Source of the DNA: Octopus sinensis
Lineage: Eukaryota
Length of the DNA stretch: 64,000 nucleotides
Direction: 5' to 3'
NCBI RefSeq assembly: GCF_006345805.1
Contig: NC_043003.1
Location: forward strand, 116,994,001-117,058,000
A program made the translations under genes and the position numbers. Shown in pieces: positions 2,191-49,618 of the stretch. The notes below the pieces were generated by a model, which saw nothing but the letters and a program-made list of their open reading frames with translations, was not told where the DNA came from and searched no databases. The stretch's first letter is position 1; each line of letters starts with the position of its first letter.

Positions 2191-4635
2191 TAAATATATA
2201 TATATATATATATATATATATATATATATATATATATATATATATATATGAAAATATATATATATAGATATATATATATACATATATATATATATATATA
2301 TATATATATGTATGTTTATATATATATATATATATATGTATGTATATATATAATTTCTTGATCACGTGACCGACCAGACCATCAGATGTTGTTACACATC
2401 GCTGGTCACAATGTGTTCGCATTGTTTTAGCCTTCGAATGACGCCACCCCGCTGGCTAAGCGAGCAGGCCAATATATATATATATATATATATATATATA
2501 TATATATATATATATATATTATATATATATATATATATATATATATATATATATATATATATATATATATATATATATATATATATATACATATGTGTGT
2601 GTGTGTTTATACATATACTTTGAGAACGCATGGCCTAATGTTTAGCGTGTTGAACTTACGATCGCGAGATTGAGGTTTCAATTCCTAGACCAGGTGGTGC
2701 GTTGTGTTCTTGTAGAAAACACTCCGTCTCATATTGCCCGACAGTGAGGCGCAATAAATACCACACCATTTGTCCACTTATTATTTTTCTTATAATTTTG
2801 GTTCATATCCTGCACTCCAGGCTATCCTGAGTTTAGTGTCTTGTGTCGTACTGCAGTGGGCACTGACTGGGGTACACTTTGGAACACGCTACTAAACCCG
2901 AGATGGCTTGCTTTTCGCACTTTACTGCATCCCACTTTATACACACACACACAAATATATATATATATATATATATATATATATTATATATATATATATA
3001 TATTATATATATATATATATATAGTCGCCATAATAGATCGTTAGCTACTACACACATTTTTTTTTCTCTCCTTGTGTCTCCTTGTTTTTTTCTGTGTTCC
3101 TTTCTGTAGAGAGCGTAGGCTCAAATGTAAAAAACTTCTTCTATTCCTGAGCGTTATTCTAATACATCTCTTTGTTTTGTACACCACCTGTCTTCGTCTT
3201 TTTTTTTTCGTAGACTCTTCCTATATACTCTTTTACTCTTTTACTGGTTTCAGTCATTTGACTGCGGCCATGCTGGAGCACCGCCTTTAGTCGAGCAAAT
3301 CGACCCCGGAAATTATTATTTGTAAGCCCAGTACTTATTCTATGGATCTCTTTTGCCGAACCGCTAAGTGACGGGGGTGTAAACACACCAGCATCGGTTG
3401 TCAAGCAATGCTAGGGGGACAAACACAGACACACAAACATATACACACACAAACATATACACACACATACATATATATATATATATACACATATATACGA
3501 TGGGCTTCTTTCAGTTTCCGTCTACCAAATCCACTCACAAGGCTTTGGTCGGCCCGAGGCTATAGTAGAAGACACTTGCCCAAGATGCCACGCAGTGGGA
3601 CTGAACCTGGAAGCATGTGGTTGGTAAGCAAGCTACTTTCCACACATCACTCCTGCGCCTATATATATATATATATATAATATATAGTGTGTGTGTGTGT
3701 GTGTGTGTGTGTCCTGTCTCTTTCTCTCTCTCTCTCTCTCTCTCTCCTCTCTTCTCTCTCTCTCTCTCCTCTCTCTCTCTCTCTCTCTCTGTATATATGA
3801 CACGTTCATTGAAGTTAAAATGATGCAGCGTTGAAGAGCCTAATAAACCATTCCAAGTATACGATGACTGATGACTTCCCTGCAGCCTTAGTGTTTCTCA
3901 TCTAAATTTTCGGCACACTACATTGCGAGCGGATCACTTACACTACCAACTATCTTTCTTTTAACAGTTTCCAGATCATTGTTAGCGAGGCGAAACTTTT
4001 AACACCAGATCATATATATGTTCAAGTGAAGTTAGCAGTCTTCGTGTTTTTATTTGGCTAATGTGTGCCTTCCACACGGTAATCACTATGTGTATATACA
4101 TATTCATACATACATATATGTATATATATATATATATGTGTGTGTGTGGTGTGTGGTGTGTGTATGTATTTATATTATATATAAGCTTATATATATATAT
4201 ACATATTTATATATATACATATTTATGTTATATATATATATTATGTATATATTATTATGTATATATATATATTATATATATATTATATATGTTATGTATA
4301 TATATATATTATGTATATATTATTATGTATATATATATTATGTATATATATATTATGTATATATATATATATATATATATATATATATTACCTATATATG
4401 TATATACATGTATGTACACATATATATATATACCTGTATATACCTACATATATAGAGAGAGCTATATATATATATGTATATATATAAATATATATATATA
4501 TGCAAAAAGCAATAAAGATTCAAGTTAATTTAAATGAATTTACTTGAATATGGTGTATTAAAACTATAACTGTTTTAACAATACAGTAATGTGGGGTGAT
4601 TATAAGCGAGAAAGAAGCAACAAGAATGGATAGGT

Positions 4636-4723
4636 TTTTAGTACAATCGTTTCATACAAGGACAGGCTTTATTAAAAGTTGCAAAAATTACAGCATAAAC
4701 GTGTCCGTACTCATCAGCTAAAA
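4636..4723 (-). ncRNA. Type I hammerhead ribozyme
   Basis: Reverse-complement copy of the 6818-6908 motif: ttttag-CTGATGA-gtacggaca...tgtccttgtat-GAAAC-gatt-GTA-ctaaaa. Confidence 0.8.
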
Positions 4724-47560: not shown

Positions 47561-49554
47561 CCACTACTAAAACTTGTATGAAGCCATAATTGTTGCTGGT
47601 GTCGGAAGGTGAAAAATATACAACGAAATGCGAAGGAGCAAATATAGTAAGGTATTTTATTTGATCTGCCGAGAATTCTGTTAATGCAACATGCAATAAA
47701 TATATACTTTTAGCTCTCCATCGTACGGCGCTGAAAACGAGGAAAGCTTCAGTAATGTATGTATGTGTTTATTGTAATATGTTTTACAAGTATTTTTTCA
47801 GCGAATTTGTCTTCACATTACGATATATTGTCAATGTAAACAGGAATGTATTTTCATATTTATTGAGTCCCCTGCCAAATCACTTTACACAAAAAAATAT
47901 TTTCCTGTACTTACATAATATTTGTTTCTGTTGCACAAGTCCATATGTGGGTGTGCACGAGAGAGAGAGAGAGGAGGGGGGAAAGAGAGGAAGGAGAAGA
48001 AGGAGAAGAAGGAGAAGAAGAAGAAGAAGAAGAAGAAGGAGAAGAAGGAAGAAGAAGAAGAGAAGAAGAAGAAGGAGAGAAGAAGAAGAAGAAGAAGAAG
48101 AGAAGAAGAAGAAGAAGAAAAGAAGAAGAAGAAGAAGAAGAAGAAGAAGAAGAAGTGAAATAAAAGCTAAAAGGTTTAAATTATTGACAGAATCAGTTTG
48201 TTATGTTTGTGTTCTCTGTTGCTTTTTTTATCTAGAATCCTACAAGTTAAGGGAAATGAAAATAGGATTTAGAGAGAGAAAGACAAATAGTGAGCTAGAG
48301 AGAGAGAGAAGAAGGGGGAGAGAGAGAAATGTAGAGAAAAAGAAACAGAGAGAGAGGGAGAAAAGGAAACAATGAAAATGATAGACACAAGGAGAGAAGA
48401 GTGAGAGGAGAAAAATTCTTTGATAAAGAGAAAGGAATAAAGAAAAAATATCTTTCACGAAAACAAAACATGCATAAAAGAATAACAATCAGGGAAAGAA
48501 ATTTTGCTAGGAGCAATGCAGAAGCAGAAAATAAAATCATCAGTTAGTGAATGCAGAACGAACCTTTCAAGGAATATGCGCTTACATGTGCATACATGTG
48601 CATACACACACACACACACAAACACACACACACACACACACACACATATATATATATATATATATATATATGCGTTTGTGTGTGTGTATGAATTTCTGAA
48701 TGCAATAACGAAATCAGAGAAAGGGCCAAACTATATATAGTATATTGAAGTTACTGTTTTCTAAGTTCTCTGCGAAATACAGGTTCTGTGCATAAGTAAT
48801 CATAAGTACATTGTAGTTGAGAAGACGAGCGACGAATTTAGTGTGTGCGAGTGTGTGTGTGTATTTTTAAGTTTAGTCATTTACACGACATCCTAAACAG
48901 ACAAATAAAAAGAATGATATGATTTAAACAAAGTCAGCCTTTTCTTATTCCCATCTAGGCGCTTCTTCTTTGCTTTTATGTATGTATTTTCCTTCACTCT
49001 GATGAAGCGTCATGTTCCACATCGGTTTTATTAACAAATATGATGAATATTATTTTAAGCATATCAGTTGGAATACCACATAAATACTGGAAGTAGAAAC
49101 AGCTGTTAGATGGGATGCAGTCTATTTGTATTGAATTAAAAAATAATAATTGATGTATGTCAGTTCCAGAAACTCGTCTCTGGATGTAGGCTTAGATGGG
49201 TGGAGGTGCTAATCTCCCCCTTGTAAGCATAAGGACAGAGGAAATGTGTCAAGGCCGACAGGAAGCGTTGCTGCTTCCTAGGGCTAAATAGCAGTAGTAT
49301 GATTCCCTTCATGGGACTGCCACATTAAAGTGGTTGACAGTATACAACCACTTTATCGTACCACTACTGCGTATATCACTCTGAGATATTTAGAAATTAT
49401 TTATATATATATATATATATATCATATAATTAAGGGCTAAAGAGGGTTATTCTAAAGCCAAATACACTGCTTTATCCACTTATAATCCGCTTGTTACAGG
49501 AAAATTGAAACTGAAAACGGGCAACTAACCTTTAGAAAATTTAAATTTCGTTAT

Positions 49555-49618
49555 CTCTATATTGAATCAATTTCGGACTTAATCTTATAAAAAAAGATAT
49601 ATTCCTTCTTCAGTAGAA
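49555..49618 (-). ncRNA. Type I hammerhead ribozyme (AUA) in an element of about 49423-49680 ending at (TA)n
   Basis: Minus strand: ttcta-CTGAAGA-a-gga...tcc-GAAA-TTGATTCAAT-A-tagag. Confidence 0.72.

Follow-up and report, generated by a model that had tools for sequence, protein, structure and literature searches.

Minimal hammerhead motifs in short non-coding retroelements with Penelope-like insertion anatomy in a stretch of octopus DNA

Penelope-like elements (PLEs) are recognized by an insertion anatomy that includes partial tandems arranged as pseudo-long terminal repeats (pLTRs), an adjacent inverted and 5'-truncated copy, and a 30-40-bp tail, together with a bias towards insertion at microsatellites of the (TA)n type and the presence of hammerhead ribozymes (HHRs) in the pLTRs (Craig et al. 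2021, PMC8557442). Minimal hammerheads (min-HHRs) with a palindromic helix III form heterogeneous families across metazoans, where they are found as single motifs or as opposite-strand pairs 100-700 bp apart (Cervera & de la Pena 2014, PMC4209133). In work with a purified PLE protein, both strands of the DNA were cut and extended, the protein homed to AT-rich sequence, and reverse transcription began at two neighbouring positions inside the template, ~90 nt 3' of the point where the HHR cuts (Frangieh et al. 2024, PMC11167929). Animal retrozymes have been related to PLE pLTRs (Li, Clavereau & Pollet 2026 preprint, bioRxiv 10.64898/2026.07.22.740005), and non-coding elements of the MRC1 type are presumed to use a PLE enzyme because of similarity at their 3' ends (PMC8557442). 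The subject of the present analysis is a 64,000-nucleotide stretch of Octopus sinensis DNA (contig NC_043003.1, positions 116,994,001 to 117,058,000; hereafter the window) containing nine type I hammerhead motifs, each of which, as judged by self-comparison and reading of the loci, sits within a repeated non-coding element. These elements are likely to represent HHR-bearing non-coding retroelement RNAs that were inserted by PLE-type target-primed reverse transcription, with the enzyme encoded elsewhere in the genome.

Motifs were sought on both strands with a strict descriptor that demanded a helix I of at least 4 bp, CUGANGA, a helix II of at least 3 bp, GAAA, a helix III starting with A15.1 and ending with U16.1, a cleavage nucleotide (H17) other than G, and the 3' strand of helix I. 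Six zero-defect motifs were found in the window, whereas 200 shuffles of the same sequence that preserved its dinucleotides gave 0.04 on average and never more than 1. When the descriptor was graded, motifs with zero, one and two defects numbered 6, 2 and 2, against 0.0, 0.017 and 0.93 expected. The one-defect motifs are a C3U copy at 10815 and a copy at 49613 that has an unpaired A ahead of stem II; of the two-defect matches, that at 37481 (HHR C-right) was accepted because it is the inverted twin of the motif at 37434, and the other, at 1309, is at chance level. A preliminary description of this DNA had listed nine type I motifs, and sequence reading and the descriptor scans recovered them all, along with the defects it had reported in two of them (C3U at 10815, and two stem mismatches at 37476-37534) and its seven helix III strings (8, 10 or 11 nt), every one correct and self-complementary; its expectation of a motif density above that of dinucleotide-shuffled sequence was likewise borne out. 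The catalytic core is complete in eight motifs, HHR B being defective (U3, UUGACGA), and H17 is A or C in all nine. Helix I is open and spans 5-7 bp, helix II spans at least 3-7 bp, exceeding with the other helices the minimum length that the descriptor set, and helix III is a palindrome of 4-5 bp (Table 1). A G10.1-C11.1 pair is present in B, C, E, F and G, replaced by G-U in A and by U-A in D, and only G has an extra unpaired nucleotide. Wherever orientation is readable, the HHR lies on the sense strand, 41-286 nt upstream of a constant 3' end.

Table 1. Positions of elements, hammerhead motifs and other repeats in the window. Motif coordinates run from the 5' strand to the 3' strand of helix I; TSD, target-site duplication; LINE, long interspersed nuclear element.
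Feature	Position	Strand	Description	Motif layout
Element A	4601-6943		inverted arms 4601-5255 and 6285-6943, each ~655 bp, ~98% identical	
HHR A-left	4636-4723	-	H17 A4642; predicted cut 3' of it, 41 nt from element end	UUUUAG/CUGAUGA/57-nt helix II domain/GAA/ACGAUUGU/A/CUAAAA
HHR A-right	6818-6908	+	A-left family; predicted cut 3' of A6902, 41 nt from element end	
Element B	10472-11021	+	550-bp insertion; perfect 13-bp TSD TCTGGAGACTTTA at 10459-10471 and 11022-11034	
HHR B	10809-10853	+	H17 10847; core UUGACGA (C3U)	CGUACG/UUGACGA/GAGG-CAAAAA-CCUC/GAA/ACUAUAGU/C/CGUGCG
Element C	37253-37752		500-bp insertion; 13-bp TSD TAAATCTAAATAC at 37240-37252 and 37753-37765	
HHR C-left	37381-37439	-	H17 37386	UGCCG/CUGAAGA/GGGG..27 nt..CCCC/GAA/AUUGGACCAAU/A/CGGUA
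HHR C-right	37476-37534	+	H17 37529; C-left twin	
Element D	23582-23899	+	inverted 5'-truncated 82-nt arm 23582-23663, then direct copy 23664-23899 with HHR	
HHR D	23694-23740	+	H17 23734	CCUGGG/CUGAUGA/UGGGU-UAAG-ACCUA/GAA/ACAUGCAUGU/C/CUCAGG
D2	49149-49352	+	second D-family copy; 3' end as in D (ACAGUAUACAACCACU); decayed HHR remnant ~49149-49190	
Element E	22860-23586	-	1.38 units of 531-nt repeat	
HHR E	23139-23220	-	predicted cut 3' of C23146 (H17)	GUUUUGG/CUGAGGA/49-nt helix II domain/GAA/ACAAUUGU/C/CCAAAAU
Element F	44477-45375	+	between two (TA)n tracts; 1.47 units of 581-nt repeat	
HHR F	45020-45110	+	predicted cut 3' of C45104 (H17)	CCUACG/CUGAUGA/60-nt helix II domain/GAA/ACGUACGU/C/CGUAGG
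Element G	49423-49660 (5' limit approximate)	-	C relative; 3' end ...GCCCUUAAUUAUAUG abuts (TA)10 at 49401-49422	
HHR G	49555-49618	-	H17 49560; one unpaired A before stem II	UUCUA/CUGAAGA/A-bulge/GGA..UCC/GAA/AUUGAUUCAAU/A/UAGAG
C/G-lineage copy	2019-2208	+	5'-truncated, without HHR; ends at 3' site 2, then (AT)n	
C/G-lineage copy	50178-50256	+	5'-truncated, without HHR; ends at 3' site 1 (GCCCUUAUUUAUAAG...), then (TA)n	
Two-tier hairpin 3' of HHR, B/D lineage	10923-10958; 23802-23840; 23592-23630; 49251-49288		in B; in D; in D, inverted; in D2	
APE-type LINE	13755-18388	-	nearly complete	
R2-superfamily-like LINE	~35696-38319	+	decayed; (AGT)n end at 38337-38388	
R2-superfamily-like LINE	50611-53522	-	decayed; (TAC)n/(TAA)n end at 50498-50594	
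182-185-bp repeat	7961-8334; 58254-58796; 11237-11451; 43280-43617; 55106-55349		partly in 2-3-unit tandem arrays	
~440-bp family	3224-3662; 60786-61228; 38856-39250		about ten shorter copies besides	

Independent support for the fold comes from comparing families that are related outside the ribozyme. The preliminary description had counted at least six families with unrelated sequence; several lineages do exist, but alignments show that B and D are homologous outside the HHR, as are C and G, and the number of unrelated families falls to five (A, B/D, C/G, E and F). Between B and D, helix I changes from CGUACG/CGUGCG to CCUGGG/CUCAGG by three double changes that keep the pairing, helix II (GAGG/CCUC as compared to UGGGU/ACCUA) differs in one pair by a double change, and helix III is built on different palindromes, ACUAUAGU and ACAUGCAUGU. 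C and G have in common the core, a GAAAUUG...CAAUA frame and the downstream AUAACGAA, and differ by three double changes in helix I (UGCCG/CGGUA versus UUCUA/UAGAG) and by the replacement of the central palindrome pair of helix III, G5-C7, with A5-U7, a pair that would form only in an intermolecular, dimeric helix III. Compensatory changes between related families within the window affect all three helices. When the eight distinct motifs are aligned with their loops trimmed, 94.6% of cells are paired, with double changes in 13 of 14 pairs, and slid controls give 27-44%; these pairing statistics are descriptive, because the motifs were found by requiring pairing, and the independent evidence for the fold is the shuffle control together with the B/D and C/G comparisons. 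For two copies of B, C-left, D, E or F, RNAcofold predicts a double hammerhead with an intermolecular helix III that would be 4-10 kcal/mol better than two monomers. The sequence evidence supports classing the motifs as genuine HHRs of the minimal type with a palindromic helix III.

Chance matches to a permissive descriptor, which AT-rich and repeat-rich DNA might be expected to generate, were rejected as an explanation on the strength of the six strict hits where 0.04 were expected, with a maximum of 1 in the 200 shuffles. Such matches would account for the silence of the Rfam models on these motifs and for a two-defect class at chance level (2 versus 0.93), but they are barely conceivable as a source of helices longer than the descriptor demanded, of compensatory changes between related families, and of motifs placed consistently in mobile elements, on the sense strand and near the 3' end.

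A search for further motifs, combining a graded scan at up to two defects, separate scans for 5' and 3' halves, and an unfiltered search with a covariance model derived from the nine motifs, yielded one remnant supported by homology (in D2, Table 1), the rest being at chance level except for a weak candidate at 38477-38531 (13.9 bits, E 0.27 with the covariance model). Where about seven variant or decayed motifs had been claimed, only that clear remnant and the weak candidate were recovered. A scan of the whole window with Rfam at E<=10 returned no hammerhead family, the list being swamped by microsatellite 'miRNA' matches. The 319 sub-threshold matches of this kind (mir-3149, mir-297, mir-1277 and others) correspond to (CA)n/(TA)n/(CATA)n microsatellites or to inverted repeats, for example at 63080-63159, 46115-46572 and 37401-37514, and the MIR7807 match is merely the inverted HHR pair of element C.

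The motifs closely resemble the min-HHRs of PLEs (PMC4209133) in their type I topology, their CUGANGA...GAAA core, a very short palindromic helix III suggesting that they act as dimers, a G10.1-C11.1 pair in most families, families within one genome that differ greatly in sequence, and occurrence as single motifs or opposite-strand pairs 100-700 bp apart, mostly with no open reading frame (ORF) nearby. They differ from those in PMC4209133 in having a helix I of 5-7 bp rather than 4-5 bp, a long helix II domain (27-60 nt) in five families, and a helix III that is a full 8-11-nt palindrome, which in C/G could fold into a 4-bp monomer hairpin; the host is a cephalopod, a group outside that study, and no HHR in the window was found in the pLTR of an element encoding a reverse transcriptase (RT) and a GIY-YIG endonuclease. 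The preliminary description overstated the novelty of these motifs, as the same picture was published for metazoans in 2014 (PMC4209133); what the window adds is a cephalopod to the list of animals with PLE-type minimal hammerheads. Within the literature library searched, cephalopod coverage consists of a count of 235 Rfam Hammerhead_1 hits in the genome of the giant squid (PMC6962438), and no paper connects cephalopods with retrozymes.

Of the elements that carry the motifs, two (B and C) are flanked by 13-bp TSDs; inverted twin copies are present in A, B, C and D, and partial tandems in E and F, with unit lengths of 365 nt for B, 531 nt for E and 581 nt for F. In element B, an inverted copy b'-a' (10472-10656) precedes a full 365-nt unit of order a-c(HHR)-b (10657-11021). 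Because the inverted copy begins in b and crosses the b-to-a unit junction, the template must have been longer than one unit, either tandem or circular; and because the inverted copy carries a 46-nt 'tail' past the 3' end of the direct copy, so that the copies end 46 nt apart, a single insertion must have made use of two different 3' ends. Element C has inserted into the ORF of a decayed R2-type LINE, between the CCHC and endonuclease regions, and consists of head-to-head arms (37253-37443 and 37472-37667) that match in 188 of 196 columns and each carry an HHR, the right copy extending 85 nt further as a tail (37668-37752). HHR C-right has since acquired two changes, both in stems (helix II GGGG/CGCC; helix I CAGUA). 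The inverted arm of element D pairs with 23769-23850 at 96%, and the direct copy, 49 nt longer than the arm, ends in ...ACAGUAUACAACCACU / ACAGTATACAACCACT, followed by (TC)n(TA)n. One-sided tails therefore measure 46 nt in B, 49 nt in D and 85 nt in C. In element A, a 1029-bp unique core separates arms whose 3' ends point outward, the right end abutting (TA)5, and one HHR lies 41 nt from each outer end, reading outward. This is the largest of the elements and contains no ORF longer than 60 aa, in keeping with the earlier statement that none of the HHR elements has a supportable ORF.

Elements E and F are arranged as direct partial tandems. The repeats of E (22856-23055 and 23387-23586) are 99.5% identical, and its 3' end, ...CACCCUUAUUAAUUAAU, abuts (AT)41; those of F (44527-44814 and 45108-45375) are 91% identical, the upstream repeat starting 3 nt past the position equivalent to the HHR cleavage site. 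Identities of 96-99.5% between arms or repeats, or 91% in the case of F, indicate that the insertions are fairly recent. Ahead of the direct copy of F lie inverted fragments (44477-44526) that are reverse complements of two separate parts of the unit, 44682-44713 and 44586-44607; 74 nt of internal unit sequence are deleted where the two parts meet, and their fusion with the direct copy runs through AGG microhomology. The inverted piece has its 3' end in …CCCTTAATTACTTAGT, a second 3' end that lies ~80 nt upstream of the principal one. Element E, on the minus strand, has its 5' end (23586) joined to the outer end of D's inverted arm (23582) by a 4-5-nt overlap, and the resulting D+E block (22860-23899) sits between (AT)n and (TC)n(TA)n. 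Judged from this arrangement, the block looks like one complex insertion that arose by a template switch between two unrelated HHR families, in which case a shared enzyme would be implied.

Alignment of the C/G lineage reveals two alternative 3' ends ~86 nt apart, both of them reused by independent copies: site 1 by C-left, G and the copy at 50178-50256, and site 2 by C-right and the copy at 2019-2208. Copies that are 5'-truncated and lack an HHR end at the same 3' ends as those that possess one. Five of 12 outer termini abut (TA)n tracts with n of at least 5, as compared to an expectation of 4.4% of positions (P about 1e-4), the D+E block and F are each bracketed by (TA)n-type tracts, and the 3' ends of E, F and G have in common a CCCTTAWTTA-like motif (5 matches versus 0.38 expected). 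In the B/D lineage a two-tier hairpin lies 3' of the HHR, with a constant outer stem (AGCC/GGCU) and an inner stem that differs in a compensatory manner, GGAGA/UCUCC in B and AGGAAGC/GCUUCCU in D and D2; from its sequence, the hairpin is a candidate RT-recognition, protein-binding or RT-start element.

Long inverted repeats dominate four of the seven loci (A, B, C and D), as they would if the elements were foldback or MITE-like (miniature inverted-repeat) DNA transposons with HHR-like strings in their terminal inverted repeats by accident. This is a very improbable origin, however, for insertions whose TSDs are 13 bp rather than of a short fixed length, whose arms in B, C and D leave 46-85 nt at one end uncovered, which include direct partial tandems (E and F) and one-armed, 5'-truncated copies with constant 3' ends, and whose HHR always lies on the strand reading toward the constant end. 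Another candidate origin is as passengers of the resident LINEs, akin to short interspersed nuclear elements (SINEs) and dependent on the APE-type element at 13.7-18.4 kb or on R2-type elements rather than on PLEs. Several LINEs are present in the window, and the 3' untranslated region (UTR) of the APE-type LINE is followed by AACCUUA(TA)9, resembling the CCCUUAAUUA(TA)n ends of E, F and G. Yet no HHR element resembles the 3' regions of the LINEs in self-BLAST, the R2-type LINEs terminate with trinucleotide repeats rather than (TA)n, and target-primed reverse transcription or twin priming by LINEs gives neither long inverted duplicates of 3' segments, nor partial tandems, nor a one-sided tail (PMC8557442), all of which makes dependence on LINEs quite improbable.

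Insertion by a PLE-type mechanism is concluded instead because the anatomy of the loci matches the signature of Penelope-like elements in the literature. In common with the autonomous PLEs Penelope/Poseidon, Neptune and Nematis (PMC8557442, PMC11167929), the elements of the window have pLTR-like partial tandems, an adjacent inverted and 5'-truncated copy, a one-sided tail, an HHR placed a short way 5' of the RT start, and targets that consist of AT-rich or microsatellite DNA; the two start sites of PLE RT explain the one-sided tail. Unlike autonomous PLEs, they have no RT or GIY-YIG ORF, their units are 0.37-1.7 kb rather than 3-4 kb, and their tails are 46-86 nt rather than 30-40 bp. Also comparable are the non-autonomous PLE derivatives of Chlamydomonas, MRC1 and other Chlamys elements (PMC8557442), which are also short and non-coding, with pLTRs and head-to-tail multicopy insertions, but which reside in a green alga and are without canonical HHRs. 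The earlier reading of the population as a non-autonomous Penelope-like system is thus upheld as to insertion anatomy, and mobilisation in trans is presumed.

A possibility, if on balance a doubtful one, is that ordinary autonomous PLEs with coding regions located elsewhere left these elements behind, as solo pLTR ends or as remains after severe 5' truncation. Strong 5' truncation is characteristic of PLE insertions, and their HHR is located in the pLTR near the RT start, so a short insertion would hold just the HHR region; moreover, Cervera & de la Pena ascribe most single genomic min-HHRs to truncated PLEs (PMC4209133), and the full unit length of A, C, D and G is undefined in the window. 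In B, E and F, however, the 3' end runs directly into the start of the next unit with no coding sequence, and the units are only 365, 531 and 581 nt long where an autonomous PLE unit would span several kb, and in element A the 1.7 kb upstream of the 3' end is without an ORF of more than 60 aa. Because B, E and F are complete units of 365-581 nt without coding capacity, at least these three are truly non-autonomous, and it is for A, C, D and G that severe 5' truncation of longer elements is possible.

Non-LTR retrozymes of animals (PMC7229834; 10.64898/2026.07.22.740005) are likewise made up of AT-rich units that span a few hundred nt, lack coding capacity and each contain a type I HHR, and have TSDs longer than 4 bp, longer-than-unit templates and a proposed dependence on PLEs. 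If the elements were true retrozymes, a circular RNA released by two tandem HHRs would be the template for rolling-circle reverse transcription. Units of 365-581 nt fit or approach the 170-400-nt range of animal retrozymes, the templates of B, E and F exceeded one unit, and the upstream repeat of F starts within 3 nt of the cleavage-site equivalent. This last feature is what the 5' end of a ribozyme-made template would give, and is only suggestive: it is one of about seven 5' ends examined, so the coincidence, at ~1.2% per test, is weak at ~8% after multiple testing, and as proof of cleavage in vivo it was rejected. Retrozymes form tandem arrays, from dimers to 62-mers, with abundant circular RNA (PMC7229834; 2026 preprint), whereas here there are at most 1.47 units and one HHR per strand, and an uncleaved tandem transcript accounts equally well for copies longer than a unit. 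The ribozymes, too, are of the minimal PLE type, and not of the canonical type with loop-loop contacts found in invertebrate retrozymes. At no locus are there tandem units each with a same-strand HHR, and the term 'retrozyme', applied to these elements in the preliminary description, does not fit in its strict sense. A retrozyme identity is accordingly unlikely for the copies in the window; for master copies elsewhere, the strict reading is possible.

A PLE-type mechanism for these elements might operate as follows. Tandem master copies would be transcribed into multimers, in which neighbouring min-HHRs would pair via the palindromic helix III to form a double hammerhead, each ribozyme cutting 3' of H17 (A or C). 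Cleavage could free a unit-length RNA, which a host ligase of the RtcB type could circularise. A PLE RT/GIY-YIG protein would then bind the region 3' of the HHR and nick AT-rich or (TA)n DNA, and reverse transcription would begin at either of two internal sites 46-86 nt apart, with both DNA strands acting as primers. The expected outcome would be head-to-head 5'-truncated twins with a 'tail' at one end and 13-bp TSDs, and partial tandems would arise when the template was read past a unit junction. By analogy with described systems, we infer self-cleavage, dimeric action, the identity of the mobilising enzyme and its activity in trans, and any circular RNA.

Several observations weigh against this account. 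No same-strand pair of HHRs exists at any locus in the window; a locus contains either a single HHR or, in A and C, one on each strand, and the longest arrays comprise 1.38 (E) and 1.47 (F) units, so these copies cannot themselves release unit-length or circular RNA, and as ribozyme dimers they are probably inert end products. Likewise, no PLE RT/GIY-YIG gene was found in the window by Pfam on large ORFs, tblastn with the RT pieces of the window, or a six-frame GIY-YIG/YxDD regular expression; the only YxDD RT is that of the APE-type LINE, and Pfam yields LINE domains alone. The absence of an autonomous PLE from the window, asserted earlier, is confirmed by these domain, tblastn and regular-expression searches, and it follows both that the mobilising enzyme must come from elsewhere and that the PLE link is drawn from architecture alone. 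That architecture is itself imperfect, since tails of 46-86 nt are longer than the usual 30-40 bp, and since a (TA)9 run also lies ~190 nt past the ORF2 stop of the APE-type LINE, adjacency to (TA)n may not be unique to PLE-type insertion. Rfam matched no hammerhead family in the window at gathering score, and none at E<=10 on 23100-23800 (701 nt, with two motifs inside), a miss that is expected for loop-less minimal helix III variants yet is a failed test. Published min-HHRs cleave poorly in vitro (PMC4209133), and in the one PLE reconstituted in vitro, HHR mutants left insertion unaffected and no reads ended at the cut site (PMC11167929). Finally, no min-HHR was detected with the one-defect descriptor in either of two other cephalopod-type loci, 21 kb each, from Acanthosepion pharaonis (cuttlefish; GCA_903632075.3 CAHIKZ030000531.1:2110942-2132021) and from ENA ERZ21867824 ctg122871l; chosen via LINE RT homologues, these loci together cover 42 kb. 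The 'very abundant' ribozyme ecosystem of the preliminary description fares poorly on this point, as one window is no basis for extrapolation and these 42 kb are free of motifs. The second of the two loci additionally bears a Ty3-type RT/RNase H/integrase element.

A bolder picture is offered tentatively, with more doubt than confidence. The genome may carry an unusually dense, diverse and recently active set of non-autonomous elements, with units of 0.37-0.58 kb, that bridges PLE-type min-HHRs and retrozyme-like units and is copied from longer-than-unit, possibly circular, RNA; unrelated families would be co-mobilised by one enzyme, and the 5' end of F would be the footprint of a cut made in vivo. 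Co-mobilisation by a single enzyme is suggested by the shared CCCUUAAUUA-type 3' ends together with the chimeric D-E insertion, and because annotation based on Rfam is blind to these motifs, the population would be largely unannotated.

Whichever mechanism applies, standard Rfam annotation misses every min-HHR in the window, and the loci provide unusually clean single-locus examples of PLE-style integration for short non-coding units. They also lend support to a recently proposed origin of animal retrozymes and HHR repeats as non-autonomous derivatives of PLEs. What the ribozyme does in the biology of PLEs, whether processing, circularisation or mere hitch-hiking, is not a new question raised by these loci, which are reasonable material for testing it.

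Searches beyond cephalopod-type loci were made in metagenomes. The conserved B/D module gave 0 matches, and the C/G HHR pattern gave 10, which are chance matches, apparently in microbial coding sequence, with no HHR helices; the one inspected reads as an ATPase-type motif. The RT ORF of the window itself has no entry in the contig index.

The remaining repeats of the window include the LINEs mentioned above. The APE-type LINE encodes an ORF1 with a CCHC knuckle, a fragment of an Exo_endo_phos domain, an RVT_1 domain split over two ORFs, and zf-RVT; the best named relatives of its RT are RT proteins of Acanthosepion pharaonis, at ~50% identity, and beyond its 3' UTR come (TA)9 and, further on, (CTAT)n. 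The two decayed LINEs resemble the R2 superfamily in having a CCHC motif and a restriction-like endonuclease tail of the PD..D/E..K type, and that at ~35696-38319 is the one interrupted by HHR element C; a word-indexed protein search with a 150-aa R2-type endonuclease ORF found no homologue. Abundant among the other repeats is one of 182-185 bp, which contains a tRNA-T-arm-like GAGTTCAAATTCCGCCGAGGTCGAC segment and, from its sequence, is probably a SINE; ARAGORN found no tRNA in the whole window. Copies of a second interspersed family, of ~440 bp and without an HHR, are 72-89% identical and often lie beside (TA)n.

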